From NCBI GenBank assembly GCA_002269645.1, contig NIVC01001096.1:186001-250000 (forward strand): DNA of 64,000 nt. The letters run 5' to 3'. Numbering within the stretch: position 1 is the stretch's first letter; every line of letters begins with the position of its first letter. A program made the position numbers and the translations under genes. Shown piece after piece: positions 27,110 through 61,132 of this stretch. The DNA comes from Macrostomum lignano (taxonomy: Eukaryota). The notes under the pieces are model-generated. The model was not told where the DNA came from. It ran no database searches and saw only the letters and a list, made by a program, of their open reading frames with translations.

Positions 27110-27790
27110 ATGATAAAGCGGTTAATTATTAAAACCAGCAGCCACAAATGCCTACTTCTAATAGCAGCCGTTATTCTGGCAATTTTCGCCAACACATCTG
27201 GCGCAATTTCACGGAGCTGTTCAAGAGGCTCCTACTTCAACAGCTTGAGCGGCATGTGCGACCCCTGCCCAACAGAATGCTTGACGAGTCCCCAGTCACC
27301 AAACGTGACCGATTACATGCGACGGAAGTGCCAGAAGCTGGCAGACCAGTGTTCACCAAATCTAGCGACTAGCAAGTCCGGTTCAACCTCATCAACGCCA
27401 ACATCTGACAGTCCAGTGAGTAAGAGTCCAAAAAACTCTGAAGCCGGAGTCAACAATGAAGACAGGCAAGCACCGCCAGACGATCGCTATGGTCATAAGG
27501 CTGCTGGTGGGATTGTTGGAGCTGCTATTCTACTGCTTATTTTTGTCCCAGTCGGTAAAAAGCTGCGATCAATAATAATTCGAAATAGAAGACCTGGAGA
27601 AAGCAACATACCGATGCAGAACATCAAGGAAAACTCAGATGCAGCTTCAGCCACCCTGCTCTCTGGCTCGAATAATACTCAAGAACCGAACGGTTTTCAA
27701 ATTAATGAGGAAGCAACTGCCGACGACAAAGTTACCAGCCAGCCTGACAATCCACCTGAAGACCCTCCAGCAGTACCTAATGTTGAGTAA
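27110..27790 (+). CDS. Single-CRD TNF-receptor-like type I membrane protein (copy 1, 226 aa)
   Basis: Hydrophobic signal peptide; CRD CSRGSYFNSLSGMCDPCPTEC...C...C resembles the BCMA/TACI/Grindelwald CxxxxYFxxLxxxCxxCxxxC pattern; Ser/Thr stalk; TM GGIVGAAILLLIFVPVG followed by KKLR. Confidence 0.75.
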   Translation: MIKRLIIKTSSHKCLLLIAAVILAIFANTSGAISRSCSRGSYFNSLSGMCDPCPTECLTSPQSPNVTDYMRRKCQKLADQCSPNLATSKSGSTSSTPTSDSPVSKSPKNSEAGVNNEDRQAPPDDRYGHKAAGGIVGAAILLLIFVPVGKKLRSIIIRNRRPGESNIPMQNIKENSDAASATLLSGSNNTQEPNGFQINEEATADDKVTSQPDNPPEDPPAVPNVE

Positions 27791-28512
27791 GCATGCACGC
27801 ATCCAGTCACTTATCATTTAGGCATGGTGAACCAATTGACTAATGATGGAGATGTTACTACCATAACGAACGACGCATAATGTGCTTGAGAAAATACACA
27901 AGTAGCTAATGTAGCTTATGCGTACTTAAATTTCGTAGCATAGGACACAACTTGTGCCATAGACGAAACAGGCGTGATGACACCGCGGCATTAAAAATCG
28001 GCTTCAACTTTTCGTCTTTATTGGCCCTCTGTGTACAAGTACTCTGGTAGCGTCCTTCTACAGGTACTCCGATCCAGTTTTCACTGCATCTAGTAAATGT
28101 TGGATTGGCAAAGCTTGAACCTAACGTTTTATACTTAGTACTGCAATCTGTGAACAAAATGTATTATTTAAATTGTACATGTTTTACTGTGATTACTACT
28201 GAATTCAGCTCGTATGCAACAGCATTAATATAAAGTACATTCTAGTTCATAATATTGCAATCAATGTATTTACCCTATTTAATTGTCAATTCGTCAGTAA
28301 ACGTTGCGTAGTTCTAAAACATTGGCTTGTCATTTGAAAATATCTGAAAGTAACTGTTGTTTATAGTAAACACTAACACAATTCTAACACTATTTAATTG
28401 AATGTATAATATATAGTCAGTTGAGTCAGTTAAGTAATGTACTGTGTAGTATATTCCGTAGTGTGTAGCAAACAGAAAAATACTGTTATTGCTGTTAGTC
28501 TTCATTTTCCGC

Positions 28513-29063
<551 letters not shown>

Positions 29064-29564
29064 GCCATCAATATTTGGCAGGTAATCATTCGCTACGATG
29101 TTTGGTAGTCTCTAATAAAATATTACCAGTCTACTAGGTACTACTTCCAAAAATGCAGTCGCTAACACCTAAAAAAGGAAAAACCAAAGGCCCAATAGTA
29201 CGTCTGCCAGCAAAGTTCCCTTTTTCGCTGTACAGAGCTATGCTGTACATTTATCAGCTCTGTCTTCGCAGTTCTGTCCAAGCGTAAATGTACACTTACG
29301 CCTAAACTATGTAGGCGTTGACTGGCTCTGCACAAGTGAGTGGCAGAGGACTAGCTCGCATCTGGCTTGGGTAAAGTCTAAAAATAGATCTTATTTACGC
29401 TTCAAGAGAACCCCAATCCCGACAGTTTACAAGCTGTACAATCTGGCAAGCTCTAAATGTACGTAGCAAGCTTTCAAAGAGGAATGACTGCACACAGAAA
29501 ATATGGGCTTGACTACTTGTTATTTCTTTTATAATTTTTGACTGTTGACGAATAAAAGTTTAAT

Positions 29565-30182
29565 ATGGCTATCAATCTGCGCGCACAGTCAGGGATATTG
29601 TGGGCTTTTGTATGCCTGTACATAGTCTCGAGGGCTTCGGCAGTTCCAGCGGTGACGAGATGTCGCGCAGACCAGTACTACAACAGTTTGAGCCAAATAT
29701 GCGAATCGTGTCCAGAGGAATGCCTGCTCGGAACAGTTAGAACAGCTTGCACTGGCATGGCTAGCCAATGCCAACCGCTGACAACAACTACTCTGACCGT
29801 TGTGACGACGCATGAAGTGACGACAACAAGTCAGAACTCGTCGGGCGCTGACGTGGAGAACTCGTGGATCATCATTGTCCTAACAACGATTGGCATCCTA
29901 CTGTTCTGTTTGTTAGTCTTTTTATTTTGTAGATTCTTTGCTTTTAAAAGAATGGATAAATATTTGAGACTAAAGCTGCACCGAGCTGGAGAGGCTACAG
30001 TGCCAGCACCGGAGACAGCTGGGCCTGAAGAGTCGGAGCCTTTGGCAAAGCCAGCATCGGCATCATCCTGTCAAGAACGTGCAGAACAACACGAAGTCAG
30101 TGCGCAGGCTAGCGCTGGCCAACACGCTAAAACCATTTCTGCACCAAAAATTCCAGGACTCGATGCAGATGATCGTTATTAA
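29565..30182 (+). CDS. Single-CRD TNF-receptor-like type I membrane protein (copy 2, 205 aa)
   Basis: Signal peptide; CRD CRADQYYNSLSQICESCPEEC...C...C; Thr-rich stalk; TM IIIVLTTIGILLFCLLVFLFC; tail contains VPAPET and SCQE (TRAF-motif-like). Confidence 0.78.
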   Translation: MAINLRAQSGILWAFVCLYIVSRASAVPAVTRCRADQYYNSLSQICESCPEECLLGTVRTACTGMASQCQPLTTTTLTVVTTHEVTTTSQNSSGADVENSWIIIVLTTIGILLFCLLVFLFCRFFAFKRMDKYLRLKLHRAGEATVPAPETAGPEESEPLAKPASASSCQERAEQHEVSAQASAGQHAKTISAPKIPGLDADDRY

Positions 30183-31250: not shown

Positions 31251-33565
31251 TCAGCCATTAGGGGTCATGGACAAATATTTATTCAAAAACGAACTAGCTT
31301 TACTTTTATCCTTCCAAATAAAAATTTGTCATTTGCCTTTTATACCGCAGTTGGTTGAAATCTGCTACAGATTATTCACGGTCTGGAAACAACTCGACTG
31401 AAGAAAAAATCATACGAAAAATATTTTAACAAAGTAAAACAAAAGTAAGCAGATCGTACAGATCGTACATTTAGATGCAAAAGTACTCCAAAACGCAAAA
31501 AAGAACATTGTGATATGTGTTAGACAACTTTAAACTTTAAATAAACATAATAACTCAGTAAACTTACAAACTACATTAAAATATACTGACTTGCATTATA
31601 TTTTGACTAAGTTCGAGTGAACAGTTGCCTTCAAATAGATTCATTAAGGCAGACTTAGTCCAAATCGCAGTCGAAGATCAGGCATGCCACTGCTGAAAGC
31701 AGGCTTCCAAGCAGAGCCCCGGTTCCCCTGGACACTCAGGGCAGCAGTAGATCGTGCGCTTGCTGCTTCCAGCTCTGTAGCAGACACGACAGCGCTTTGT
31801 TGGTCTTGGCTGACTGTCCCGCGCCACAATCTTCGTTGGAAAGTGCGGACTGACTGGGCCACCTGGAGCGGCCTGGATGCCAGCGGCCGGGCGCTTCCTG
31901 CTCGTTCCGGTACGCTCCACCAGCTCCCGAATGCTGGCCTCAAGAAACTTGGCGAACGTCTTCTCTCCACCGCACCGGCTGTACACAATCCAAGCGTTGC
32001 GAATCATTTGAAGAAAAAGATGCAAGCCGAGCTTCAAAAACCACTTTGTAGTTTTCCTCCCTGGCAGATGAGGCTGTAGATGACTGTCCATTCTGTCAAC
32101 ACCACCCATGCACCGATTGTAGGTGAGAACTGACCTGCTCTTCTGCACCACTGTTTCTGCTCCTCCACGAACCACGCGTCTGGTTTGAACCCTCTCAGCC
32201 GCCTCTTTCGTGTCCAGCAAATACAGAGTCTTCAGGCCACTCTCCTTTCGTTCAACGATCTTGACAGCCAGCACCCCGTCTTTGCGCATGAAGGCGACGT
32301 CGTTAGGTGGAACGTGCAGCTGTCTGAGCTCAATCGGCACACCTCGGTCGGCCCGGACGGTACAAGTCAGGTGCGTTCCTTGAGTCAGCAGGTACTCTGA
32401 CAGCCGATAGGAACCGAACCATTTATCGACAAAGATGCGGTAGCCTTGGTGCAACAAGTTGTAGCAGAGCTCAACAACAATCTTCTCGCTGAAGGACAGA
32501 TTGTCTCCCTGCAACTGTTCATCGAACCGGCGGTTCTCCTCTGGGGTCGAGTGAACGCGGAAGTTGTACAGGTAGCCTGATTTGGCCTCACATGCACAAT
32601 ATAGCTTTATTCCGTACTTAGCCCGCTTCGTTGGAATATATTGCTTAAAGCGCAGGCGACCTTTGTACAGCACCAAAGACTCATCCACGCTCACATCCTC
32701 CTCGGGCCTGTACACATTAATACAAGCCTCTTTCAAAGCCTGCAGCAACGGACGGATCTTAAAGAGAGGATCGTTGACAATCGGATCCTCAGCGCAATCG
32801 TAGAAACGGAGCAGACCAAGTAGCTGCTTGAAGCGGTCCCTAGAGAGAGCTTGAGGTGCTTGAAAGTACGGCGTACTGTAGTAACTGTCTGTGCTCCAGT
32901 ACTCGTTCATTTCGGCCTTTTTATTGGAACCCATGTAAAGGCACATTCCTAACACTTTCTTTACTTCATTCGCACTGCAATCTCTCCATTGCGCAAAACT
33001 CCGAGGCAGGTCGTTGACATTGACAGAGTGGATCGCCGCCCAGGCTCTTCGATTAGTCCATTTTGCCAGGTCTTCGAAAAGGCTATTGGACAAAAAAGAC
33101 CGAGAAAAAAGGACGTTGCCTGCTCAACATCACCAGGTACGCAAATTCCTGGATTCAGTCCAGGTGTCCCTAGAAACTCGTGCACATTCGCTTGCACGTC
33201 ATGCCCAGCAACTACAGAATGCCAAGACAGCTCTTCCGTCTCTTCAGCAGTGCTCTGGCCGTCCGACTCACCATAATCGTCCTCTGACATGATGTCTTCT
33301 TCTTCATCGGACGTCATTAAGTCCGAATCGGAAAAAACTTTCAAATTCTTCCATGAGTGCAGCCATAATCTTCAGCTGTAAAACTTTCTATGTTAGTTTA
33401 TGGAGACTTAGTTTTGGGCCTTATTCATAGTCAATGTCTTTTTATCAGACTGGAATGACCACAGACTTAGCAAACCATTCTGCTGAAAGGAATAGTCTAT
33501 GGTAAGCGCTGCTTACCATCCGACCGGAACGGAGATGAATAAAATCCTCTTCAGTTCGGAAGAGG
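31034..33565 (-). mobile_element. piggyBac transposon, TTAA-flanked
   Basis: TTAA at 31030-31033 and 33566-33569; CC...GG termini; subterminal motif ATGGTAAGCAGNGCTTRCCA at about 31048-31068 and 31156-31175, with an inverted copy at about 33499-33519. The left boundary is less certain because the terminal TIRs match poorly. Confidence 0.75.
31678..33317 (-). CDS. piggyBac (PGBD4-like) transposase with one frameshift in an A/T run at about 33092-33097
   Basis: Catalytic triad VSVDES, FVDKWF, GGVDRMD; C-terminal Cys-rich domain CRVC...CCPEC...CLEACFQQWH; acidic N-terminus. Adding one T joins ORFs 32961-33344 and 31678-33093. Confidence 0.9.
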
Positions 33566-34115: not shown

Positions 34116-34781
34116 TCAAAGTACACTTGGTGCAGATGCGTTGCCAACGATTCGCTCAATAGAAGCCGAAAAACTTGTTGTCTCGGCTAACACATATTTT
34201 CCGTTGTCTTTGTCGCCTGGGGTCTTGGTTGGCACAGCAGCACCGGTCACCAGAGAATGACTCTCGCTTTTTTCCGCGCTTCTGGCTGTTTTTTGTTTCG
34301 TGGACTTCTTATTTTGAAGCACTACAGCCAAGATTGTAGCAAAAGTACACAAAATTAATGAAACTGTAACCAGTATAATAATTATATGCCAGGTAGCGAA
34401 CACCGTCTTTGATGAAGAAGTTACGCCAAAACTGTTCAACTTTTGAGGCTCACTGATTGACCTCTCAGACAATGCGGTGATTCCAACTGCACTGCTGGTG
34501 TAAACAGCTGTTGTTGTCAACCACAAGCAGTAGCCAGCTCTCCACAGCCTCTTGCACCGCAGCGACCAATAGGGGCTGTGAATTTCATTGCAGTGCGGGT
34601 TGAGGCATTGCGCAGGGCACGACTCGCATGTTCCAGACAACTCGCTGTAGTAGCTACCTGGAGGACACACCGTGGCCTGACGCATGTACGATCTGATCCG
34701 CATGGTCATGCATTGTGTCAAACTCACCGATGCCATCAGCAAAACTATGAGCCTTAGGCTAAGTTGACAGCTTGCAAACAT
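34116..34781 (-). CDS. Single-CRD TNF-receptor-like type I membrane protein (copy 3, 221 aa)
   Basis: Signal peptide; CRD CPPGSYYSELSGTCESCPAQC...C...C...C; Ser/Thr stalk; TM IIIILVTVSLILCTFATILAVVL followed by QNKK. Confidence 0.78.
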   Translation of the reverse strand: MFASCQLSLRLIVLLMASVSLTQCMTMRIRSYMRQATVCPPGSYYSELSGTCESCPAQCLNPHCNEIHSPYWSLRCKRLWRAGYCLWLTTTAVYTSSAVGITALSERSISEPQKLNSFGVTSSSKTVFATWHIIIILVTVSLILCTFATILAVVLQNKKSTKQKTARSAEKSESHSLVTGAAVPTKTPGDKDNGKYVLAETTSFSASIERIVGNASAPSVL

Positions 34782-35384
34782 TGTGCTTATTCTATTTTTT
34801 TAAAGTTGATAAAGTTTCGAATATTAACCGGATTTTGGATTCGTGATGCAAAATTTTAGCTCCGTCGTGCAAAATAAAGGATTCTAAAACACTGTACTAG
34901 CGTATGCGCTTTCGATTGTACTTAAACATGCACTCGTATGCTAAAAATAGCATGCCGAAGTTCCACACAATGTTCATTGCACAAAAGGAGGGCTTTCATA
35001 CTCGTATTGTTGCCAAAGCCGTACTGTAGTGATCAGTGATTTTAATTTATCAGAATATAACAGAAAAAACTTCAGATATACTTTTTAGCTAAAAAGCATC
35101 CGTGTTCATATCTTACCTGTACTTTATTGATAAGCCTGTACAAGCTTTTTTCGCCATTTACTGAAATGTGGTTGCTATTTTGATAAACTAAACGCATCGA
35201 AGCGAAAAACACACGCAACAGAAAGGACTGAATAAACAACTCGATTAGACAAATATATATTTGAATTAATTTTTAGTCAACCAAGTAGCGTTAGCACTTG
35301 CATTAATTTTCATTATGTCAATAAAAGTTTTATCCATGACAGCTAAAAATTTCATCGTTCATTACAGCTCCATCATCTCATCTC

Positions 35385-35872
35385 CCATTGACTCCCATTG
35401 ACATCACCCATTGACTGAAGAAATCACCCATTGACTGAAGAAATCACCCATTGACTGAAGACATCACCCATTGACTGAAGACATCTCCCATTGACTGAAG
35501 ACATCACCCATTGACTGAAGACATTACCCTAGACTGAAGAAATCACCCATTGACTGAAGAAATTACCCCAGACTGAAGACATCACCCATAGACTGAAGAC
35601 ATCACCCATAGACTGAAGACATCACCCATTGACTGAAGACATCACCCTAGACTGAAGACATCACCCATAGACTGAAGACATCACCCATAGACTGAAGACA
35701 TCACCCATTGACTGAAGACATCACCCATTGACTGAAGACATCACCCATTGACTGAAGACATCACCCACTGACTGAAGACATCACCCATAGACTGAAGACA
35801 TCACCCATTGACTGAAGACATCACCCACTGACTGAAGACATCACCCACTGACTGAAGACCACCCCTTGACTA
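35385..35872. repeat. 19-20-bp minisatellite (GACTGAAGACATCACCCATT), about 25 copies
   Basis: Direct periodicity. Confidence 0.9.
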
Positions 35873-36391
35873 AAGACAGGACCTCCAAGTAAAGATAGCC
35901 ACCCATGACCTGCTTCACCGACCTTTTAACGACACTGATGTAGAACGACTCGACGTTCCGGAAGTGATAAATTAATTTTTTAACTATTTCTCTATTGTCT
36001 CAGTGCTAATGCTTTCAGTTCTTTTCTATGCTCGCTGTGTATTTTTCAGAGTAAAGATGTATGTTATTAGTCTTAAATATCAGTTTGACTAGTTCTAAAT
36101 TAATCAAATATACTTGAAGAGGTTGATAGAGTAAAAAAGATTAACATAGCTATCAATAAAGAAAAGAAAGTGATACTGTTTGCTAACTTTCAATATATTA
36201 ATTATTTTCTGTCACTATTTAATTGATGAACTAAGATATTAGTTTAGAATGATTATGATTATGAGTCAAGTTTATTCGCATAAAAATCCAGTAGACCTTT
36301 GGCCAAGTCTTGAACTGTCGCGTTTCGTTGAGCTGTCTAAAACAAAAATTTAACACCAGCGTTATAAAGTAGCTCGCATTATCTGATTAGA

Positions 36392-36550
36392 AAGGGTTGT
36401 AGCCTAGTGGTAAGAGCGTCAGACTCGCGGCTGAAAGGTCGAGGGTTCGATTCTCGGCCCACTCGGAACAATTTGTGTCCTTGAGCAAGACACACTTACA
36501 TGTAACTCTGCATTGCTTCAGTTCACCCAGCTGTGAAATGGGTGCCAGCA
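36392..36550 (+). mobile_element. tRNA-derived SINE (family 2) with V/Meta-domain-like core
   Basis: A-box TAGCCTAGTGG, B-box GGTTCGATTCT, then GTGTCCTTGAGCAAGACAC...TTGCTTCAGTTCACCCAGCTGTGAAATGGGTGCC, similar to widely conserved metazoan SINE cores. Confidence 0.75.
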
Positions 36551-36577
36551 TTAGCTTTAAGCGACACCGGTTAAAGC

Positions 36578-36720
36578 ACCGGTCACTGCGCCTTGTGGGT
36601 TGGTCCACAAGGCTGTTAATTGCACGAGCAGAGCCAAGCCGAGATTCTAATTTCGCCCCAAATTAATGTGACTGCACTTGGAATCGAGCCCAGGCCGCTG
36701 GTACAGCAGAGGGCTACGGC
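36578..36720 (-). mobile_element. 5' half of SINE family 1, minus strand
   Basis: Reverse complement reads GCCGTAGCC...GGGCTCGATTCCAAGTGCAGTCACATTAATTTGGGGC...CAAGGCGCAGTGA, matching 4023-4177. Confidence 0.8.
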
Positions 36721-36743
36721 AGAGCGCAACTGAATAATCGCAG

Positions 36744-39700
36744 TCACGAATGCAGACTTACCAGACGCTCCATCGCTTTGGCCTTTTCTTCTCGCAGAGC
36801 TGCGCTGTTCAGCACCAGCTGGTGATTTTCTTCAACAATTCGATTGACAATGTCCGCTGCCGGGCAGTAGAGCAGCGCCATCAGCACCTGCTGGGCATCG
36901 GGAGATTCTGACGGCTTCAGCAGCTCAGTGAACCAGCTGACATCCCGCCAGCACCGGAGATCAGCTCAAACTGGAGACATTTCAACAAACAGTCAAAGTT
37001 CATAAAGAACACTCCAGAACTTCTGTCCAACTCTAAAGGAAAATTTGCTTGCAGAGATGGCGGCAGAAATTCTAGTCGAATTTGTTGATGCTGGGAAAAC
37101 TTGAAGCAAAACTTCCAGGCGCAGTCGCTGGTGACCAGGTATTGCTCCACGAGGCGGTTGGCTCTAGCTTGGTTCGATGCCAGATCGTCCGACCTCCATT
37201 GGGGATATTTAATGCCACTGTGAGATCGGAATGTGTGACTTCTGATGGCTTGGACTGCCGCGGCTCTGTCACCTTCTCTGAGATGCGTCAGCACTCGAAG
37301 CGATGCGGCTGTGGTTCTGGCGCACGCCGGCAAGTCATTAATCAATTTCAAATGCTGCGCCAAGCTGCAGCTGTTTCCAGGCGTTGCCAGGTTGACCAGC
37401 AACTGCCTGACTAAATCGTACAATTGATGGTACTCCTGAACCAAGTTGGTGCTGTCTGGACTTTGAGCATCGAACTCTTGGCACAGTTGCAGGTCCGGCA
37501 TGACTAGAAAAGGTTGATAGTAAAACACCTGACAGGCAGGTCTCAGAGGTTCTGAGCAATATTGCTCCAGTTGATTTGTCAGATCCTGCCGCACCGCCTC
37601 GATGGCATCGAAGATCTGCTGCCGATCGGAGTGGTTTGGTTCGAGTCTGACGTGAACCGTCGGACAGAAAATATCAGGGATCAGCGCGGCAGTGCCATCC
37701 GAACTAGCTAGGAGACGGTTCTGCAAAGTGCGCAGTGACTGGCGAGTCAGCTTGAGCACATTCTCCGGGCGCCATTCTCCACTTGGAGTCGAATGAAGCA
37801 TTTGAAATAGAAGCAACTTTGCCAGATTGTCCGGTAAACCATCAACTAAACGAGTCAGTAGTCGACCGATGATGTACTTTAATAGAACAAAAACCTGACC
37901 CTGAACAGTGCTCAGACAGCGTAATAGTCTTTGCTTAAGGAATTGCGTACAAAACTGAAATAGACTGGATGGTGTAGCATCTCGACAGCGTTCGGCGTAG
38001 CACCTTGAACTACTCAACTCTTCCTTTAGCTGACTGATTACGTCATCAGTGAGTTTGGTCTCTGAATTCTGCAGCAGGCTTACCGGAGGATGACGGCAGC
38101 ACTCCAGCACAGGTGAGTGGCTGATTGCTGGAATCTTGGCTTGGACAGATCCGACAGACTTGGATGGCGACAGTTCATCTGCAGTTAGAGGGGAAATGTT
38201 AGCGGCTTGATTCCCAGTTTAAATAAGGCCTTCACTGCCCCTGCTCTTCCCAAAAACTGCTATAGTGCTGCCGCTGCTATCGTTGTCGTGCTAAAGCCCC
38301 TTGGTGCTAAAGCCCCTTGGTGCTAAAGCCCCTTGGTGCTAAAGCCCCTTGGTGCTAAAGCCCCTTGGTGCTAAAGCCCCTTGGTGCTAAAGCCCCTTGG
38401 TGCTAAAGCCCCTTGGTGCTAAAGCCCCTTGGTGCTAAAGCCCCTTGGTGCTAAAGCCCCTTGGTGCTAAAGCCCCTTGGTGCTAAAGCCCCTTGGTGCT
38501 AAAGCCCCTTGGTGCTAAAGCCCCTTGGTGCTAAAGCCCCTTGGTGCTAAAGCCCCTTGGTGCTAAAGCCCCTTGGTGCTAAAGCCCCTTGGTGCTAAAG
38601 CCCCTTGGTGCTAAAGCCCCTTGGTGCTAAAGCCCCTTGGTGCTAAAGCCCCTTGGTGCTAAAGCCCCTTGGTGCTAAAGCCCCTTGGTGCTAAAGCCCC
38701 TTGGTGCTAAAGCCCCTTGGTGCTAAAGCCCCTTGGTGCTAAAGCCCCTTGGTGCTAAAGCCCCTTGGTGCTAAAGCCCCTTGGTGCTAAAGCCCCTTGG
38801 TGCTAAAGCCCCTTGGTGCTAAAGCCCCTTGGTGCTAAAGCCCCACGATGGCACTCCCAAAGGTAAGCCCCCAAAGCAAAAGTCCTGGCTACATACCCAA
38901 GCAGTCTCCTCTGTAGCTCAAGCGGCCGTCTTCGCGCAGCTCCAGCTGCTCTCCCGTTGCTCCTGGAAGCAGAGCTCTGCCGCTGCCGCACCGACAGACG
39001 CCGCGAACGTGCAGCACCCGACCGGGCACCGGCAGAACCAGCTTCACTTCGACATCGTCAGCTTCAAATTCGCCGTTAGCGCAGGCAAGTTGGGCACCCC
39101 AGCAGTCGGCAAAAGTTCCCGAAAAGCGCATTCGAAGTTCCTCGAAGTTGTTTTCATCGTCGCCACGATGGCACAGCCTGGTCAAACGAGCTCGACAGAT
39201 GGCCTCGGTGGCGTCAACCGTGGCGGCATGCAGACAGGCAGTCAGCTGGTGAAATCCGGCTGCCAGCAGGTTGCGATGGAGGCTGACGCTGAGATCGGAG
39301 TCTGAGAGCAGCGGCCTGGGTATGGAGAGAAGGTCACACTTATGTCTAACAGTCTAACAGGTGACACAATCCTGTCTAATAGTCCAACAGGTGTCACACT
39401 CCTGTCTAACAGTCTAACAGGTGTCACACTGCTGTCTAACAGTCTAACAGGTGTCACACTGCTGTCTAATAGTCTAACAGGTGTCACACTGCTGTCTAAT
39501 AGTCTAACAGGCGTCACACTGCTGTCTAATAGTCTAACAGGTGTCACACTGCTGTCTAATAGTCTAACAGGTGTCACACTGCTGTCTAACAGTCTAACAG
39601 GTGTCACACTGCTGTCTAACAGTCCAACAGGTGTCACACTGCTGTCTAATAGTCTAACAGGTGTCACACTGCTGTCTAACAGTCTAACAGGTGTCACACT

Positions 39701-42700
39701 GCTGTCTAATAGTCTAACAGGTGTCACACTGCTGTCTAACAGTCTAACAGGTGTCACACTGCTGTCTAATAGTCTAACAGGTGTCACACTGCTGTCTAAC
39801 AGTCTAACAGGTGTCACACTGCTGTCTAATAGTCTAACAGGTGTCACACTGCTGTCTAATAGTCTAACAGGTGTCACACTGCTGTCTAACAGTCCAACAG
39901 GTGTCACACTGCTGTCTAACAGTCCAACAGGTGTCACACTGCTGTCTAACAGTCCAACAGGTGTCACACTGCTGTCTAACAGTCTAACAGGTGTCACACT
40001 CATGTCTAACAGTCTAGCAGATGACTCCAGAACCTTATGCACCAGACGATCACCTTTCCGGATCCGTAGCAGCTAATGCATCAATTTCGCCTGTTACTTC
40101 TCGAAGCTCGCTAGCCAGGGTCACGTGACCTCGCCGCTGTGCCGCCTGCCAAGCGGCGTCGCCACGAAAATCTCGCGCCGTCGGGTCGGCGCCCCCGGTG
40201 CCACCAACAAGCAGGCGGGCGATTCGAACGTCGCCAACTCGAGCTGCCAAATGCAGCACCGTCTCGCCGGTGTCTCCGCGTCGAAGATTGGCGTCGGCGC
40301 CGGCGTGCAGTAGCTGTCGAACGGCGCCCAGCTGGCGCCGAAGCGCCGCAGTGTGTAGCGGAGTGGCGCCGCTAGCAGCGGTGCGGCAATCGATGGAGGC
40401 GCCAATGACGGAGGCGGCCAGGCACCTGCGGAGTCGATTTGGAAAATCCTTACTCTCGATTTTCACCTACTCTACCGAGTCTTACTCTACCGAGTCTACT
40501 CTACCGAGTCTACTCTACCGAGTCTACTCTACCGAGTCTACTCTACCGAGTCTACTCTACCGAGTCTACTCTACCGAGTCTACTCTACCGAGTCTACTCT
40601 ACCGAGTCTACTCTACCGAGTCTACTCTACCGAGTCTACTCTACCGAGTCTACTCTACCGAGTCTACTCTACCGAGTCTTACTCTACCGAGTCTTACTCA
40701 CCGAGTCTACTCTACCGAATCTATTAAAAAACTCTACCAAATCAATTCCTCCCACCTGACAACTCTCGAATAGCCCCTCTGAGCAGCCACAAACATCGGC
40801 GAGAATCCACCGGGCGCCGTCAGACCCGGGTCGGCCAGCCCAACCGACACCAGCAGCTCAACTGAGGCCGTCTGGCCGCCCTGAGCCGCCAAGTACACCG
40901 GAGTGGCGCCCCGCGCGTCTGTCGATCAACGTCAGCCTGCATAGCAACCAGCAGGGCAAGCACCTCAGGGCGACCTCGCCGTGCGGCCAGGTGCATCGGC
41001 AGGGCAACTTCCGGACTCGCCTGCGCCGCCAGCAGCGCCGACACCGTCCCGACGTGCCCCGCCTCGGCCGCCAGCGACATCGGCGTCGAGCCGCAATCCG
41101 CCATCGCATCGACGTCGGCTCCGGCCACCGCCAGCCGCGTCACCATGGCAACTCGACCGGCCCTGGCGGCCAGGTGCATCGGTGAATAACCACCGGCTGC
41201 CGTCCTCGAGTCCAGACCAGCCTGAGCGCGGATCAGCTCCGCGAGACAGTTGGCACGGTTCGCGGCCACCGCCAGATGAGCCGCCGACGCGCCGTCGTGA
41301 CGCCGAGCGTCGGGATCGGCGCCGCAGTGGAGCAGCAGCCGAATCTGCTCTGGTTGAGAGCTGGCTACTGAAAGTAGTAGCGCCGTCTCGCCAGAGCGTC
41401 CCGACACAGCGTTCGGATCGGCGCCAGCTCTGAGCAGCTGTCCGACTGTCGAGAGGCAACCCTGGCGTGCAGCTCGACATAGCGCCGTTGTGTCACCGTC
41501 GTCTGCGGCATCATCGAGAGTGTCCACATTCATGTCGGTAAATGCTTCTTCGTCGGCAAGTGCTAATGCAGAATCGACATTGAGCGGCGCTTGAGCTTGG
41601 TACAGCCTCGAGAGGACATTCGGGTCGAGCGGGGAGTGGCTGTAATATTCAGTGGCGATGTTGTTCACATCCGCTTGGGCTCTGATTAGCTCGTCCATTG
41701 CCGCGTAGCGCTGGAATCGGGCCGACAGGCTGAGTGGCAGCAGTGCTGAGCTGCCGCACAGGTTGGGATTTGCCTGGGAGGCAGTTGAATTGGTTGGCTA
41801 AATTAGTAACCTACTCTAAGTAGGTTAGTTCAGTGAGATGCCACCCAGAAATCTAACCAATTCATTCTACCCAATCTACCCAAACTAACTCTACCCAACC
41901 TATCTAATCTACCCAACCTAATTCTACCCAACCTACCAATCTACCCAATCTACCCAACCTAACTCTACCTAACCTATCTAATCTACCCAACCTAATTCTA
42001 CCCAACCTACCAATCTACCCAATCTACCCAACCTAACTCTACCCAATCTACCCAACCTAACTCTACCCAATCTACCCAACCTAACTCTACCCAATCTACC
42101 CAACCTAACTCTACCCAATCTACCCAACCTAACTCTACCAAATCTACCTAATGCATTACTGATGCTCCATGGCCACATACAGGCCCCATTAAACCACTTC
42201 AGGAAGCAATCTTTGGCCACCTGTGCATCCAGCAGGAGTCGGACCAGATCTAGACGTCCCGACATCGAGGCAATCGCCAGAGGTGACATCAGAGCGCCGT
42301 ACTCGCAGCCGCCTTGGTCCGGATCGGCGCCGGCCTGCAGCAGCAGCAGCCTCGCAGTGCCAACGTGTCCACCGCGGCAGGCAGCAGCCAGTGGTGATTC
42401 AACAGCAGCATCAGCGGCAGCAGCCGTATCAACTACTTGCAGTAGTTGCCTGATAACAGAATCCCGGCCGAGTGCAGCCGCAGCGGCCATCGGTGTGGCA
42501 TCAGCGTGGTTTTCCTCGCCGTAGTTGGCATCGGCCCCGATGTCCAGCAGGGCAGCCAGCAGACGTTCGGAATCATCGGGATGTTCAGCAGTGCAGGCGA
42601 TGCGCCACCACGGCCTGGGGTCGGCACCGCCTTGGATCAGCAAGCAGCCAATCGAGACAGTTGCTACCGTCAGAATGTTCTCCGGATTGGCTGCACTTTT

Positions 42701-42973
42701 CAACAGCAACAGCTCCACCGTTGATTGATGACCGAACCGAGCCGCGGCGCCGAGGGGCGACTCGCCGAACAGATCCGCGGTGTCCACTTGAGCCATCCGG
42801 CTGATCAGCAGCCACGCCAGGGAATCCCGACCTTCCGCCGCCGCGTGCCACAACGCCGACCGGCCCAGGCTGTCTGCGGCATCGACTGCAACCGACTGGC
42901 TGTCGAGCAGCCTTCGCACGTCGGCCACGTCGCCAAGTCTGGATACCGCGATGAGTTCGGCGGCTTCAGCCAT
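36744..42973 (-). CDS. Ankyrin-repeat / Mab21 (cGAS-like receptor, cGLR) fusion protein, about 1330 aa; exons 42973-42221, 41773-40756, 40425-40054, 39315-38897, 38178-36744; two -1 frameshifts (about 40910 and 36955)
   Basis: All four introns are GT-AG with matching phases (0,2,2,1). Exons 1-3 encode roughly 15 ankyrin repeats. Exon 4 has an NTase-like motif SGTFADCWG...ADDVEVKL. Exon 5 has Mab21 C-terminal signatures (FLKQRLLRCLSTVQGQVFVLLKYII; LPDNLAKLLLFQMLHSTPSGEWRPENV; IPDIFCP). Exon total 3997 nt + 2 restored bases = 1333 codons. A GTAAGT at 36761 could indicate a further 3' exon. Confidence 0.8.
38289..38843. repeat. Perfect 16-bp minisatellite (CTAAAGCCCCTTGGTG), about 35 copies, in ANK-cGLR intron 4
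   Basis: Direct periodicity. Confidence 0.95.
39342..40020. repeat. 30-bp minisatellite, about 22 copies, in ANK-cGLR intron 3
   Basis: Unit GTGTCACACTGCTGTCTAAYAGTCTAACAG. Confidence 0.95.
40468..40720. repeat. 14-bp minisatellite (TACTCTACCGAGTC), about 18 copies, in ANK-cGLR intron 2
   Basis: Direct periodicity. Confidence 0.95.
41850..42147. repeat. Degenerate CTACCCAA-based repeat (about 24-bp period) in ANK-cGLR intron 1
   Basis: Direct periodicity. Confidence 0.85.
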
Positions 42974-43938: not shown

Positions 43939-44400
43939 ACTTCGCAGTCGCAAAACTATGAAACAACTATGACACTTGGCGAGAGTTCGCAGCATAATTT
44001 ACCGTCATGACAGCAACTCTTTTCTACCGTTAACTGTGCTTGTATACAGGTGAAGACTGAAGAGAAGTGTTTTCAAGTACACCAGTCCTGTGCAGCCGAC
44101 TCATATGAAAACAATAATATATACTTGGCTGCAACTATTATAAATAAATGCATTATATGCTTCAGCTAGTGCTATTTTTATCCATTTCGCAATGCTTCAT
44201 GGCCGGAGTGTACAGTCAGTGTCTGCTGCTCTGTAACAAGGAACTATTCAATGTACAATTAGGTGTACATCGGTTAACAGTTTTATGACCCCTTATTTAA
44301 ACGTTTAGAAGCCTCTCTCGTAGGGTTAAAGAATACAAGATTTCCTAGAAATCTCACTGAGCAGCATTTTGAATATTGCCAGAGACATTGTCAAAAACAC

Positions 44401-47400
44401 ATGGCAACATCTGCTGCAGAGCCTGGAGCTTCTAGAAGCGAACAAGAGCTCATTGCCGATTGCACCTGCCCGGTGTGTCAGGAGCTGTTCCAGCATCCCA
44501 GAGGCTGACAGCCTGCAGGCACACATTCTGCAAGAAGTGCGCCAAAAAGATGGCCGCAAAGACTTCGAATCCGATGGAGGAAGCTGCCGAAATGTCATTT
44601 GGCTTGTTCGGGATGTTTCACCACCGGGAGCGTCAAACTTCGGCGAAGGAGAAGCCGGGCAGCGTCTGCTGTCCCATCTGCAGGGAGACTAGCGAGAAGT
44701 TCGAGCCGGATGAGACCATCGAGTACTTGGTTAAGGTGAGCTAGGTAGGGTGAGTGGACTGATTAGGCTTAGAGTAGGTTTGGGGTAGGTTTAGAAAAGA
44801 TTTGGAGTAGCTTAAGTAGATTTGAAGCAGGTTGAGTAAGACTTGGAGTAGATGGAGTACGTTTAAAGTAGATTTAAAGTAAATTGAGTAAATTTTGAGT
44901 AGGTTTAGAGTAGATTTGAAGTAGGTTGATTAGATTTGGAGTAGGTTGATTAGATTTCAGGTAGGTGGAGTAGATTTTGAGTAAAATTGAGTAGATTTGG
45001 AGTAGGTTGAGTAGATTTAAGGTAGGTTTAGAGTAGATTTAGAGTAGGTTGAATAGACTTGGAGTAGGTTGAGTAGATTTGAAGTTGACTGAGTAGATTT
45101 CAGGTAGGTTTAGTAGATTTGGAGTGGGTTGAGTAGATTTGGAGTTGGCTACGTTGAGTAGACTGTCTCCCCCAAAAACTGCCGCAGGTGCTCCAGGAGA
45201 TGCGACATCAGAGCCGTTGCTCTGGCGCCGAGTCCTGCCTGACCGAAGCCACGCTGCAGTGCCCCTGCTGCGACAAGCGCTTCTGTCAGTCGCACCATGC
45301 AGCCCAGCTTACCGCCCTCAAAGACTCCGGAACCGCTCTGCTCAAAGACCTGGACTCTTTGCTCTTTGAACCGGACCAAAATGGCGACGAGAAGCTGAAG
45401 CAGCTGCAATCAGCGATGTCGGAGTCTGTAGAAATTGAGTCGTTGCTAGCCGAACAGCTTCATCGGAAATTTGCCGATTTTCGCGAACAGATCGGGCTGT
45501 GCCAATCCCAGCTGCAGTCTCCCCTTGTCCCAGATGAGGCCGAGCGGTCGGTGCTGCTCCTGGACAGAGCGGTGCTGAGACAGCTCACCTCCAACGGGGC
45601 CAGCGCCAGGCTTGCCCGTCTGCTACCGGAAGCAAAATCCCGAGCAAAACGCGCTCAGGAGCGTTGGCCTGAGAGGCGGTTGGCTTTGCAGTTTGACGCG
45701 GTGAAAATGCAATACGATTTCGAAGGCTTGCTGGCTCAGCACGCCAGCTCGGCGGTTTTCCAGTCGCCTTACGAGGGCCTGCCGCCCATGCTGACACGAG
45801 TGCGGCAGCAGAATCTCTCGCAGAAGCCCTGGGATATCGGCATCCTGTCCAATCTGGAGGGCATTGTCTGCTGCGATGGGGCCATCAAGCTGCGATCCAG
45901 TGTTGGCGATTCGGCCGGATCGGCTAAAGAGTTGACTGGGCCCCTGCTGGTGATCAATGCTCAGTGCTTTCCCACCAAAATGCTGCACGTTACCGACCTG
46001 GAGGTGAGATGGTGATTGCTGGACTGGGTCATTGTGAGCTGGACTGGGTCATTGTGATCTGGACTGGGTCATTGTGATCTGGACTGGGTCATTGTAATCT
46101 GGACTGGGTCATTGTGAGCTGGACTGGGTTATTGTGAGCTGGACTGGGTCATTGTGAGTTGGACTGGGTCATTGTGGGCTGGACTGGGTCATTGTGAGAT
46201 TGACTGGATTATTGTGAGATTGACTGGGTTATTGGGAGCTGGACTGGGTCATTGTGAGCTGGACTCGGTCATTGGGAGCTGGACTGGGTCATTGCTAGCT
46301 GGACTGGGTGATTGTGAGCTGGACTGGGTCATTGTGATCTGGACTGGGTCATTGTGATCTGGACAGGGTCATTGTGATCTGAACTGGGTCATTGTGAGCT
46401 GGACTGGGTTATTGTGAGCTGGACTGGGTCATTGTGAGTTGGACTGGGTCATTGTGGGCTGGACAGGGTCATTGTGAGCTGGACTGGGTCATTTTGAGCT
46501 GGACTGGGTCATTGTGAGCTGGACTGGGTCATTGTGAGCTGGACTGGGTCATTTTGAGCTGGACTGGGTCATTGTGAGCTGGACTGGGTCATTGTGAGCT
46601 GGACTGGGTCATTGTGAGCTGGACTGGGTCATTTTGAACTGGACTGGGTCATTGTGAGCTGGACTGGGTCATTGTGAGCTGGACTGGGTCATTTTGAGCT
46701 GGACTGGGTCATTGTGAGCTGGACTGGGTCATTGTGAGCTGGACTGGGTCATTGTGAGCTGGACTGGGTCATTTTGAGCTGCACTTGGTCATTATGAGCT
46801 GCACTTGGTCATTATGAGCTGCACTTGGTCATTGTAAGCTGGACTGGGTCATTGCGAGCTGGACTGGGTGATTGTGAGCTGCACTTGGTCATTGTGAGCT
46901 GGACTTGGTCATTGTGAGCTGGACTGGGTCATTGTGAGCTGGACTGGGTCATTGTGAGCTGGACTGGGTCATTGCTAGCTGGACTGGGTGATTGTGAGCT
47001 GGACTGGGTCATTGTGAGCTGGACTTGGTCATTTTGAGCTGGACTGGGTCATTGTGAGCTGGACTGGGTCATTGTGAGCTGGACTGGGTCATTGTGAGCT
47101 GGACTGGGTCATTGTGAGCTGGACTGGGTCATTGTGAGCTGGACTGGGTCATTGTGAGCTGGACTTGGTCATTATGAGCTGCACTTGGTCATTATGAGCT
47201 GCACTTGGTCATTATGAGCTGCACTTGGTCATTGTAAGCTGGACTGGGTCATTGCGAGCTGGACTGGGTGATTGTGAGCTGCACTTGGTCATTGTGAGCT
47301 GGACTTGGTCATTGTGAGCTGGACTGGGTCATTGTGAGCTGGACTGGGTCATTGTGAGCTGGACTGGGTCATTTTGAACTGGACTGGGTCATTGTGAGCT

Positions 47401-49848
47401 GGACTGGGTCATTGTGAGCTGGACTGGGTCATTTTGAACTGGACTGGGTCATTGTGAGCTGGACTGGGTCATTGTGAGCTGGACTTGGTCATTATGAGCT
47501 GCACTTGGTCATTATGAGCTGCACTTGGTCATTGTAAGCTGGACTGGGTCATTGCGAGCTGGACTGGGTGATTGTGAGCTGCACTTGGTCATTGTGAGCT
47601 GGACTTGGTCATTGTGAGCTGGACTTGGTCATTACAAGCTAAATAAACCATACATTAACAGCCCTGCTATCTGCACAATCCAATTTAAACCCAACCTTCC
47701 AGGTGAAGCAGGTGGCTACAATAACTCCCAAGTTCAATGGCGAGGGCATGCCTGGCAGGATGCACATCTACAACCAGCGCCAGCTAATCCTTACCTCAGA
47801 CGCTTCCAGGCACCGAGTCACCGTGTTCAACCTGGAGGGTCGCACTGTGACCAGCTTCGGCGAGAAAGGCTCAGAACCTCGCCAGTTTCACAGTCCTCTC
47901 GGCCTCAGCGCATTTGGCGGTCAAATGTTCGTTGTGGATGCCAAGAATTTGAGGGTGCAGGTGAGTTGTGAATTAGTGCGCCTGCCCGAATCTTGTCTTC
48001 TACTCTGGCAGCATTGAAGTTAAGAATAACTAGAATATCTCTATATCTAAATCTAAATATCTCTATATCTCTATATCTAAATATCTATATCTATATCTAA
48101 ATCTATATCTAATCTATATCTAATCTATATCTATCTATATCTATCTATCTATATCTATATCTATATCTATCTATATCTATATCTATATCTATATCTATAT
48201 CTATATCTATATCTATCTATATCTATATCTATAATCTATAATCTATAATCTAATCTAATCTATATCTATATCTAATCTATATCTAATCTATATCTATATC
48301 TAATATCTATATCTAAATATCTCTATAATGTTCATTTCCAGCCTCTCCTTCTCTCCCCTTCTCTCCCCTTCTCTCCCCTTCTCTTCCTTCTCTTCCTTCT
48401 CTCCCCTTCTCTCCCCTTCTCTTCCTTCTCTCCCCTTCTCTCCCCTTCTCTTCCTTCTCTCCCCTTCTCTCCCCTTCTCTCACCTTCTCTCCTTCTCTCT
48501 CCTTCTCTTTCCTTCTCTCCCCTTCTCTCCCCTTCTCTCCCCTTCTCTCCCCTTCTCTCCCTTCTCTCCCTTTCTCTCACTTTCTCTCCCCTTCTCTCCC
48601 TTCTCTCCCCTTCTCTTTCCTTCTCTCACTTTCTCTCCCCTTCTCTCCCTTCTCTCCCCTTCTCTCCTCTTCTATCCCCTTCTCTCTCCTTCTCTCCTCT
48701 TCTCTCCGCTTCTCTCCCCTTCTCTCTCCTTTCTTTCCCCATCTCTCCTCTTCTCTCCCCTTCCTCTCACCTACTCTCCCCTTCTCTCCCCTTCTCTTTC
48801 CTTCTCTCCCCTTCTCTCCCCTTCTCTCCCCTCCTCTCCCCTTCTCTCCCCTTCTCTCCCCTTCTCTCCCCTCCTCTCCCCTTCTCTCCCCTGAAGTCAG
48901 GGTTGCTGTACTTGTACACCCTGTTTGAGCGTGTATATAGTATTGGCTCAGAACCTCGCCAGTTTCACAGTCCTCTCGGCCTCAGCGCATTTGGCGGTCA
49001 AATGTTCGTTGTGGATGCCAAGAATTTGAGGGTGCAGGTGAGTTGTGAATTAGTGCGCCTGCCCGAATCTTTTCTTCTACTCTGGCAGCATTGAAGTTAA
49101 GAATAACTAGAATTTAAATCTAAATATCTCTATAATGTTCATTTCCAGCCTCTCTCCCCTTCTCTCTCCTTCTCTCCCCTTCTCTTCCTTCTCTCCCCTT
49201 CTCTCCCCTTCTCTCCCCTTCTCTCCCCTTCTCTTCCTTCTCTCCCCTTCTCTCCCCTCCTCTCCCCTTCTCTCCCCTGAAGTCCGGGTTGCTGTACTTG
49301 TACACCCTGTTTGAGCGTGTATATAGTATTGGCTCAGGAAGTTGTGTGAGCGTTGCAAACCGCAGGTATTCGACATGGACAATGACTACAGCTGCTTGGC
49401 ATTGATCAAACACGATGGATTTTCCAATGGACTGCAGTCAGTCCTTGCCACCGACAGTTCCGTATTCGTAGTTGATCGCGAAAATTCGAAGATGTTCGTC
49501 TTCAACAAAGCCAACAGGCAGTCGGTGGCGCCGCCATTGAAACTCGAATGCCAACCGTTCGATGTGGTGGCAGATGACCATGGCAACGCATTGGTGACGC
49601 TCGTCCGAGAGGCCAAAGTGCTGGCAGTGAACAGGTGCGGAACAAAGCTGAAGACATTCGAATTCAAGGAGACAGCCGAAGGCAGGCAGCAGATGCCGGA
49701 CGACTTTCCGATGATGATGATGATGCCGATGCTCATGGCGAATGGCTGCCCGCCCAGGATGTTCCACGGGTTGGCGTTTGAGTCGGGCAGCAGACGGCTG
49801 TACATTGCGGACTTGATGCGGAGCTGCGTTGTGGTGGCGCAGCTCTGA
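44401..49848 (+). CDS. TRIM-NHL protein (RING, B-box-like, coiled coil, NHL propeller); exons 44401-44735, 45188-46003, 47703-47960, 49366-49848; one -1 frameshift at about 44500
   Basis: RING CPVC...[shift]...CRHTFCKKC...CPIC; B-box-like C..C...CPCCDKRFCQSH; NHL motifs SDASRHRVTVFN, FGEKGSEPRQFHSPLGL, DAKNLRVQ|VFD, PFDVVADDHGN, LYIAD. All three introns GT-AG, phase 0. Confidence 0.85.
46021..47636. repeat. 20-bp minisatellite (GGACTGGGTCATTGTGAGCT), about 80 copies, filling TRIM-NHL intron 2
   Basis: Direct periodicity. Confidence 0.95.
48944..49337 (+). repeat. Tandem duplicate of the 3' part of TRIM-NHL exon 3 plus a contracted copy of the following intron
   Basis: 48944-49110 is nearly identical to 47868-48035; the CT-rich tract and downstream GGGTTGCTGTACTTG...GTATTGGCTCAG also recur. 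Confidence 0.85.
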
Positions 49849-50054
49849 CGGCACTGACTGGCTGCGGTCACACATCTGTGCACTGCTTACGCCAAATTTT
49901 TGCTGAAATTTTCATTTTGCAACTTGTAAAACCGGATCAGTTTATTTAATGCATCCACCGCTTAGTAGCTGTGTGCTCTCGTGTAGCTTGCATTGCAGGC
50001 TGGCTGTCTGGCTCAGGAACCACCGGGGCGCGAAACCAGCTAGTCGGCTCTGCT

Positions 50055-50318
<264 letters not shown>

Positions 50319-51164
50319 TATGGGGGAAGGCAGACAGACGGCAGACAGTCAGGCAGGCGGGCGAAATGCTATAAATTATCCTGATTTTCGGAAGCCAGAC
50401 AGACAGACAGACTAACCTAACGCTAAGTAGACCTTCAAACACTTTTACGATGGGTGTAAGAAAAGTAATGAGAAATTCGTTTAAACTTTTGTCTGAATAA
50501 ACTCATGTACTTTATATTTTCATCGGATAATTGACACGTATTGACAACTAAACCACATTTTGAGCTTTATCTAACAGACAGACGTGTTGTATTGTATGCC
50601 AGTCCAGACCTCGAGACTAAAATTCAAATTTTGTCCTTGGCATTCTTGGCTTCTTGAATTTTTCGTGTCTTTATTCGTGAGTTATAATTGTTGGTACTTT
50701 TTATTAAATAATCTTTGTGTTGCTTTGTTTAGATTAGACAATTTTCAACTGTTCAGAAAGCGGCTGAAAACATCACGTGAAATTGTGACAAATTTGCACT
50801 CTAAAACCATTTCATTTATTAAGTAATTACCTACCGCTTGTTGAACAGTTATTAAATATTCTGATTCAACAATAAAGCCACTGTTTTATCCAGATAATAT
50901 TAGATTTTTCTTTTAATCAGCCCAAGCGTTTTATCTCATTCAATTGAACTTTTTTTAAAAGGACAAAACTCGGTCTTGCTGTGAATGCTCGACTCCCTGC
51001 TTAGAAATGACGTACTCTCGAGCAAGGGGAACTTCGTTTGATGCCAAGCAGGCCAAAATATGCCCAGTTATAAGGTACTAAACTAATAATAATAGTTATA
51101 CACAAAAATATTTGTTGTACACTAAATTGTGCCGTACCATGAAGCAGCCGAGAAAGACAGACAG

Positions 51165-59530: not shown

Positions 59531-60093
59531 TCAGAGAAATAGGCGCACACAAATGGAAGTGAGTGACAGACACACAAGCAGCAGTCTTTAAAGCAGTTCC
59601 TAACTAAATCATTGTGAACTCAAATTCAAAAAGAAATAAATTCAAAAGAAGAAACTGCTCATCTGAAAGAGACTCGCAGAAACAAAAAGAAAAAAATAGA
59701 GATCAGTTTTCTTTGATCAAAAATTTTTGCTCCCTAAAAAGGTAGGAAGGGTCTGGGGGCGCCACGGGCCGCATGGGAGTCATCACTGAGCTGACTGTCT
59801 TGCCACATTTCCAAGAATAATCTATGAGAGCTCTTTTCATGGCTTCATTATTCCCCGAGTTCTGCGGCGTCTCCCCAGCTGCTGGATTAGGGCTGGGGCA
59901 GGAAGGCCTCTGAACGAGACCGCACTTCCTTTTTTGGGGACGGAGGGGGCCGTGAGAGACGCGAGTGAGTGAGGCCCGCTCAAAAGGGCGAAAATGTCAA
60001 GGGGAGAGGGAGAAAAGTGAGGAGATTCAAATGAGCACGATGCATTAGCAATGGGGAATTGAAGCTGCATGGGCTGGCCGGGCTTCTTGGGTG

Positions 60094-60925
<832 letters not shown>

Positions 60926-61132
60926 CTCAGCGCCCTGCTGGCTGTGGAATTAGGCTAATCTTCATCCCAAAGGCAGTTCCGCACGAGTTACTCTGTCAGT
61001 TCCGTCAGCAAGGTTAGGGGGGAGAGGCTGAGAGAGACAAGCCGTTTTATCGACCAGCTTCAGGACGCGAACTGCTCGAGGCCTTGGCAATATTTGAGCG
61101 AAGCGGAGAGGCCGTCGGGGGGAGGGTAGAAG

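Follow-up and report, generated by a model that had tools for sequence, protein, structure and literature searches.

The 64,000-nucleotide stretch of the Macrostomum lignano genome analyzed here (positions 186,001 to 250,000 of contig NIVC01001096.1, GenBank assembly GCA_002269645.1; hereafter the window) carries on its minus strand, at 42973..36744, a gene whose five exons were spliced in silico into a frame for a long ankyrin array followed by a domain with the cGAS/Mab21 fold. We consider it probable, at roughly 0.6, that this is a single spliced gene, that it represents a divergent paralogue of the ankyrin-fused cGAS-like receptors (cGLRs) of this flatworm, and that it has kept the fold of these proteins but not their synthase activity, so that its product would have a non-enzymatic role, be it as scaffold, regulator or decoy. 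The ankyrin-cGLR architecture and the family are not new, since ankyrin-cGLRs have been listed and cloned by Li et al. 2023 (Cell; preprint PMC9980059); what is new is a divergent, annotation-truncated member with an incomplete catalytic triad.

All introns of the gene are bordered by GT...AG and the splice phases are compatible throughout, so that a frame of 1,328 codons is obtained when two bases are restored, or of 1,332 codons when it is read to the terminal TGA (Table 1). An earlier note on this DNA, made by a model from the letters and a list of open reading frames (ORFs), had proposed five GT-AG exons with matching phases, about 1330 codons and two missing bases; our splicing reproduces this structure, and the two bases are missing from one G-run each in exon 2 and exon 5. 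The motifs singled out in the earlier note were all located as well, SGTFADCWG...DDVE at 39122..39048 in exon 4, and QRLLRCLSTVQGQVFVLLK, EWRPEN and IPDIFCP in exon 5. Apart from the two shifts, the frame is free of stop codons over about 1,330 codons (about 4 kb of coding sequence), and the full-length predicted protein has an isoelectric point (pI) of 5.5. Position 36744 is likely the end of the coding region: a search for additional exons on its 3' side by three-frame translation of 36800..34700 yielded short AT-rich open segments with no similarity to the family, and 36744 is therefore taken as the stop. An AATAAA lies beyond it, at 36276, and a possible GT donor at 36761..36760, near the gene end, could be used for an alternative splice.

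The four introns each consist mostly of a different, very regular minisatellite, and because of these arrays the ORF list shows the gene as scattered pieces, interspersed with spurious repeat ORFs. The guanine-plus-cytosine content (GC) of exons 1–4 is 61–67% (61–67% also at third codon positions, GC3), compared with 50% (GC3 53%) in exon 5 (36947..38178), and the change in composition between exons 4 and 5 thus falls inside the Mab21 domain.

Table 1. Coordinates, in positions of the window, of the ankyrin-cGLR gene, its catalytic columns (counts from the family alignment), its intron repeats and other features.
Feature	Position	Strand	Remarks
Exon 1	42973..42221	-	ATG at 42973; 251 codons; ankyrin repeats; ends in phase 0 before GT donor
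Exon 2	41773..40756	-	Ankyrin repeats and acidic insert of ~70 amino acids; 1-nucleotide frameshift at G-run 40909..40912
Exon 3	40425..40054	-	Final ankyrin repeats and linker; 100% identical to PAA72382.1
Exon 4	39315..38897	-	Spine helix and first half of predicted nucleotidyltransferase core (structure model, alignments)
Exon 5, whole	38178..36744	-	Rest of Mab21 module, C-terminal domain, tail
Exon 5, part 1	38178..37946	-	Remainder of predicted nucleotidyltransferase core; includes Ser159
Exon 5, Mab21 C-terminal helical lobe	37945..37562	-	Contains QRLLRCLSTVQGQVFVLLK, EWRPEN, IPDIF; profile, Foldseek and paralogue PF20266 matches
Exon 5, family-specific C-terminal domain	37561..36944	-	~200 amino acids; ends at GGG run 36944..36946
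Exon 5, C-terminal tail	36943..36744	-	66 amino acids in corrected (+1) frame; TGA at 36746..36744
Gly of G-S	39119..39114 (codons of G66-T67)	-	G in 94; this gene G66
Ser of G-S		-	S in 92, T in 4; this gene T67
First Asp	39056..39048 (codons of D87-V88-E89)	-	D in 91; this gene D87
Second Asp		-	D in 89, E in 3; this gene E89
Third Asp	38122..38120	-	D in 76 of 84 occupied cells, S in 4; this gene S159
Intron 1 minisatellite	41866..42148	.	Period 24/74 nucleotides
Intron 2 array	40467..40723	.	14-nucleotide unit
Intron 3 array	39333..40020	.	30-nucleotide unit
Intron 4 array	38288..38844	.	16-nucleotide unit; 100% matches over 35 copies
Three paralogous intronless ORFs	6018..7358, 19396..21345, 24725..25954	+	409–649 amino acids; local tandem family
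Retroelement integrase fragments	11568..12963	+	Two ORFs; Integrase_H2C2 1.3e-18
Three small single-pass-membrane-like ORFs	27110..27790 (+), 29565..30182 (+), 34116..34781 (-)		Apparent signal peptide each
piggyBac-type transposase ORF	31678..33093	-	Uninterrupted, 471 amino acids; PF13843 3.2e-68 and zinc finger
Divergent neighbour, TRIM-type-looking gene	~44370..49850 (L001 949..6247)	+	RING-like and B-box-like cysteine motifs, by eye
Long 4-nucleotide microsatellite arrays	28437..29137, 49942..50442, 60045..60926	.	Yield spurious 'SVCL' and 'TDRQ' ORFs

Much of the gene is already present in GenBank. PAA72382.1 (hypothetical protein BOX15_Mlig030837g1, 697 amino acids), a model from the same contig, spans the end of exon 2 to exon 5; its exon 2/3, 3/4 and 4/5 junctions are identical to those of our spliced model, and the exon 4–5 translation is 100% identical to it. 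It begins at the first Met (40796) past the exon-2 shift and terminates where the as-assembled frame of exon 5 runs into a stop, at 36919..36917. The gene had been called hidden in the earlier note, and this holds for exon 1 and most of exon 2, which lack annotation because of the exon-2 frameshift, but not for the remainder. In both places the assembled sequence is one base short, at GGGG 40912..40909 in exon 2 and at GGG 36946..36944 in exon 5. A short intron as the cause of the exon-2 shift was ruled out, because a single, uninterrupted ankyrin repeat (...ADVDRQTRG[x]ATPVYLAAQGG...) runs through the site. Across the exon-5 site, the near-identical copy A0A1I8I164 (UniProt, from another M. 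lignano protein set) stays in frame (GAGGDVSWFTELLKPSE...) and reads ...GAGGDVSWFTELLKPSESP...KRL, and the tail of 66 amino acids that the +1 frame encodes in the present gene aligns with the tails of 55–75 amino acids of other family members, with which it shares the pattern W[FI]..[DE]...D..[EQ].L......C. Single-base deficits in G-runs are a typical error of long-read assemblies. A frameshift is also visible in the database entry for a sister copy (P0012), which suggests that indel errors may be frequent in the M. lignano assemblies. The two 1-nucleotide shifts would thus most likely be homopolymer assembly errors or very recent lesions, rather than marks of an old pseudogene.

The N-terminal 715 amino acids consist of ankyrin repeats, as judged by matches to the Pfam families Ank_2 (PF12796; 2.4e-84, 278.5 bits) and Ank (PF00023; 1.8e-64, 210.4 bits), with 10–11 separately scored ankyrin stretches; multiple repeats exceed the gathering threshold. 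A count by motif gives about 16–17 repeats, broken by the acidic insert of about 70 amino acids, where the earlier note had estimated about 15. This array aligns to the N-terminal arrays of the paralogues with 26–31% identity over 500–700 amino acids.

For the module encoded by exons 4 and 5, a word-indexed homologue search recovered nothing but the protein itself, whether it was started from the single sequence or from a family alignment. Homologues came to light only when 1.84 billion representatives were searched exhaustively with HMMER; with clusters defined at 50% identity, this search recovered 81 other clusters (best E 8.5e-103; 67 with E <= 1e-10), most of which align along nearly all of the 551-residue module (positions 4–547). 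M. lignano was the source of all 20 of the 81 clusters that were looked up. When 40 family members were scanned, 36 matched the Pfam family Mab-21_C (PF20266; best 1.5e-9), two showed a weak match to the poly(A)-polymerase palm domain, and 32 carried ankyrin repeats, the array preceding the module in the same protein. The family consensus contains a nucleotidyltransferase signature (VVGSFxEGWGNSL...SDIDV, RPAxDxVxA), and its segments LRVSTxFLERRLLRSL..QGQLFVxLKYL, YHAKT and MxHFF parallel the C-lobe of Mab21 proteins. A profile built from 19 trimmed family modules matched the cGAS-like receptor 1 structure 8gjy (1.7e-6) and many cGAS entries (3e-5 to 1e-4). Some family members have further domains: one carries a caspase domain (Peptidase_C14, 2.7e-25) and one an EGF/DSL array, and further cluster members are named SPRY, protein-kinase or PAP-associated proteins by their sources. 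Such combinations could be true fusions, or they could result from gene models that were merged in the older assembly.

An AlphaFold2 model of the module, computed on the family alignment, reached a mean predicted local distance difference test score (pLDDT) of 83.1 and a predicted template modelling score (pTM) of 0.87. When this model was compared with the PDB by Foldseek, all 50 listed matches were to Cv-cGLR1/cGLR, cGAS, MB21D2 or MAB21L1, each with a probability of 1.00; the best had an E-value of 2.6e-6, and the matches extend over about 370–430 columns. Because the structural matches are all to proteins of this kind, the assignment of exons 4 and 5 to a bilobal, nucleotidyltransferase-like domain with the cGAS/Mab21 fold stands as a prediction from the modelled structure. 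The proposal of the earlier note that an ankyrin array is fused to a Mab21/cGAS-like part is thereby borne out in its architecture; the structural match whose absence, according to that note, would have refuted it was found.

The further domain of about 200 amino acids that had been predicted to follow the Mab21 part is present too. Residues 345–551 of the module were modelled as a separate domain of mixed helix and strand (pLDDT 80.6, pTM 0.77) that is conserved across the family, with the motifs HPF, LPDCA, DSAWKF and NFDALL. It gave no Pfam match and no significant sequence match in the PDB, and Foldseek returned nothing significant for it, its best matches (E-value 0.39) being weak ones to helical hairpins like those of TPR proteins or Fis1. 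PAA72365.1 (P0079), a protein of 532 amino acids annotated on the same contig, either outside the window or at a place in it that was not located, matches the C-terminal extension only (query positions 326–545); the extension may thus occur without the Mab21 core, or this model may be truncated.

The catalytic site sets the gene apart from most of its relatives. In an alignment of 138 domain instances based on a hidden Markov model (HMM), the columns for the G-S pair and for the three aspartates could be followed through the family (Table 1), and against the signature h-G-[GS]...[DE]-h-[DE] with a third acidic residue this gene has G-T, D-V-E and Ser159. The Ser at the third position was also obtained with MAFFT and in a pairwise BLAST comparison with the published construct PAA86972.1, and there is no acidic residue within 7 positions of Ser159. 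MAFFT placed the D-x-D motif two residues later (E89-V90-K91); this placement was dropped in favor of that of the HMM (D87-V88-E89). The third Asp is lost under either placement, and that of MAFFT would be even worse for catalysis. The near-identical copies P0002 and P0003 share the T67, E89 and S159 substitutions, which are therefore real changes and not sequencing errors. In nucleotidyltransferases of the Pol-beta type, the third carboxylate, which is D319 in cGAS, is needed for metal binding, and its loss abolishes activity. With Ser in place of the third Asp, the protein is probably catalytically dead and would make no nucleotide signal, and the idea of the earlier note that this gene could encode a receptor that produces cyclic dinucleotides becomes unlikely. 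The module is the most divergent member of the family examined (21–32% identity to aligned members). It keeps 34 of the 54 columns (63%) in which conservation among the others reaches 90% or more, whereas these keep 82–100%; 22 family-invariant columns are retained, and the conserved positions that have been lost include 'R.S....E', the 'YH' of YHxK and the 'HF' of HFF.

Taken together, these features lead us to propose that the product of the gene is an acidic protein of the cytosol, about 1,330 amino acids long, which would comprise about 16 ankyrin repeats, the Mab21-fold domain, the domain of about 200 amino acids and a short conserved tail. It would belong, as a divergent paralogue, to a large expansion of ankyrin-cGLRs, which occurs only in M. 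lignano as far as the clusters were looked up. Most of the paralogues keep the G-S pair, the D-x-D motif and the third Asp; judged by these residues, they would be synthases that make a nucleotide signal when activated by a ligand, with the ankyrin array and the C-terminal domain as putative ligand-binding or regulatory surfaces. The present protein, with its fold kept and its synthase activity presumably lost, would instead act as scaffold, regulator or decoy, its ankyrin array possibly binding a protein; that such an array senses protein ligands, as suggested in the earlier note, is a speculation.

The comparison group is provided by the survey of Li et al. 2023 (PMC9980059), in which about 3,000 animal cGLRs were collected, 87% of them standalone and some with TPR or ankyrin modules. 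The accessible part of its Table S2 includes M. lignano accessions with Ank_2 domains (e.g., PAA67649.1), and according to its Table S3 five M. lignano family members, numbers 89–93, were cloned for a biochemical screen: PAA86972.1 (#89), PAA45980.1, PAA57558.1, PAA93208.1 and PAA68676.1. In its accessible parts, Table S5 of this study holds no M. lignano entry, and the tables do not contain PAA72382.1; we found no paper that names both Macrostomum lignano and cGLR in its text. The ankyrin-cGLRs of M. lignano collected by Li et al. come from the same species as the gene studied here and, like it, have an ankyrin array that precedes a Mab21-like core, with a C-terminal domain of about 200 amino acids behind the core; BLASTP relates PAA86972.1 to the module with an E-value of 5e-32, and the cluster that holds PAA45980.1 is homologous to it as well (E = 2.6e-20). 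Set against these proteins, which have G-S, D-I-D and the third Asp, the present gene is the most divergent; it has also lost YHxK and HFF, lacks the Mab-21_C match, and its GenBank model is truncated by a frameshift.

Human and mouse cGAS, Cv-cGLR1 of C. virginica (8gjw) and 8gjy have the bilobal Mab21 fold in common with our model (Foldseek E 2.6e-6 to 1e-4, about 390–415 columns aligned), and the helical motifs of the C-lobe align with those of cGAS and cGLR1 in the family profile. The identity is about 9–14%, and this gene differs from cGAS and the cGLRs by its added ankyrin array and C-terminal domain and by its incomplete catalytic triad. The module itself is mildly acidic (pI 6.4), unlike the more positively charged surfaces associated with nucleic-acid-sensing cGLRs (PMC9980059); as far as such a composition can tell, it gives little hint of nucleic-acid binding. 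With MAB21L1, MAB21L2 and MB21D2, which are Mab21 proteins without demonstrated synthase activity, the module shares the fold (5eog, 5eom and 7lt1 among the Foldseek matches) and an incomplete catalytic signature. These proteins, however, consist of the domain alone and have neither ankyrin repeats nor a C-terminal extension, and the family profile matches MAB21L1 with an E-value of 0.24, compared with 1.7e-6 for cGLR1, so that the gene is not an orthologue of MAB21L1/2. The cGLRs that are fused to ankyrin repeats and death domains in the coral Stylophora pistillata (PMC9980059) resemble it in combining a cGLR core with ankyrins presumed to bind proteins or ligands, but they belong to another phylum and no direct orthology was seen, none of the 20 clusters looked up coming from a species other than M. 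lignano.

Several observations weigh against the proposed reading of the gene as a divergent, inactive paralogue. The 612 residues of exons 4–5 that were scanned match no Pfam family at E <= 1, including Mab-21 (PF03281) and Mab-21_C (PF20266), the two families that the earlier note had expected to be found, and phmmer detected no PDB sequence match for the 551-residue core at E <= 10. The fold assignment draws on the paralogues and a predicted structure, and the template modelling scores (TM-scores) of the Foldseek matches are moderate (0.44–0.57, normalised to the target). The inclusion of exon 1 and of the first part of exon 2 in the gene is a prediction from the reading frame. The call of inactivity rests on the identity of residues, of which the Thr and the Glu would be conservative changes. 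It should also be noted that none of the five cloned M. lignano cGLRs is among the 15 characterised active enzymes of PMC9980059, although their inactivity does not follow from this. Finally, the two frameshifts of the assembled sequence and the strong divergence of the module can be read in another way, as signs of decay.

If both frameshifts were genuine, and if the third catalytic Asp and the YHxK and HFF hallmarks had been lost through relaxed constraint after duplication in this very large family, the gene would be a decaying pseudogene. We regard this as unlikely, though it deserves to be taken seriously. A frame that is otherwise free of stops over about 1,330 codons speaks against it, as does the nature of both shifts as single-base deficits in G-runs, the very kind of error to be expected from long reads; past the exon-5 shift the conserved family tail is still encoded, and a near-identical copy has an intact frame at this site. 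The confident AlphaFold model of the module and the invariant columns that it retains point in the same direction. We give still less credence to an active cGLR with a non-canonical site, in which G-T and D-x-E would be tolerated, another acid would replace the third Asp, and a ligand of the ankyrin array would trigger production of the messenger. Such an enzyme would fit the cGAS-like fold, the intact triads of the paralogues and the conservative nature of the Thr-for-Ser and Glu-for-Asp exchanges; cGAS itself has Glu-x-Asp. Ankyrin-fused cGLRs are, moreover, a recognised architecture (PMC9980059). Yet Ser occupies the position of the third carboxylate in three alignments with no acid close by, a loss that is not survived by enzymes of the Pol-beta type, and many further family-conserved residues near the active site are altered as well.

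The change in GC content could be taken to mean that an ankyrin gene (exons 1–3) and an independent Mab21-like gene (exons 4–5) have been joined by mistake, but this change lies within the Mab21 domain and not at its boundary with the ankyrin array. Two database models link ankyrin exon 3 to exons 4–5, PAA72382.1 and A0A1I8I164, the latter with a junction between the final ankyrin exon and the module; the splice phases are compatible, and the ankyrin-then-module order is found within one protein in 32 of 40 family members. We consider two separate genes very improbable, and return to the single gene with a retained fold and a lost activity as the preferred explanation.

The remainder of the window holds genes and repeats of other kinds (Table 1). 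The three tandem ORFs, the middle one of which (19396..21345) has an RGG-rich N-terminal extension, gave no Pfam match. Likewise without a Pfam match are the three small membrane-like ORFs, which share C..G.Y[YF]N.LS..C[ED].CP..CL, a pattern resembling the TNF-receptor module of the BCMA/TACI type; the piggyBac-type ORF sits between these small membrane-protein genes. The TRIM-type-looking neighbour is annotated as a protein of 580 amino acids and has a faint precomputed NHL match.

The analysis lengthens the gene model from the 697 amino acids of PAA72382.1 to about 1,330 and points to two sites in the Mlig_3_7 contig NIVC01001096.1 at which the assembly is probably in error by a single base. 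It leaves the knowledge of the cGLR class itself unchanged, and it draws attention to the C-terminal domain, about 200 amino acids long, that is found throughout the family; this domain has no detectable relatives and is an unexplained feature of these flatworm cGLRs. One may speculate, and we do so with considerable doubt, that the ankyrin-cGLR expansion (at least 80 clusters at 50% identity) constitutes a flatworm-specific repertoire of innate immune receptors in which dead members act as decoys or regulators. If this were true, the expansion would be comparable to the enlarged NLR/TLR families of other invertebrates, and the task of its variable ankyrin arrays would be to recognise proteins or other ligands that are not nucleic acids. 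For the family, the gene suggests that at least one lineage of the known ankyrin-cGLR expansion has kept the fold while losing the catalytic triad, and it would thus offer a natural pseudoenzyme to set beside its intact paralogues.

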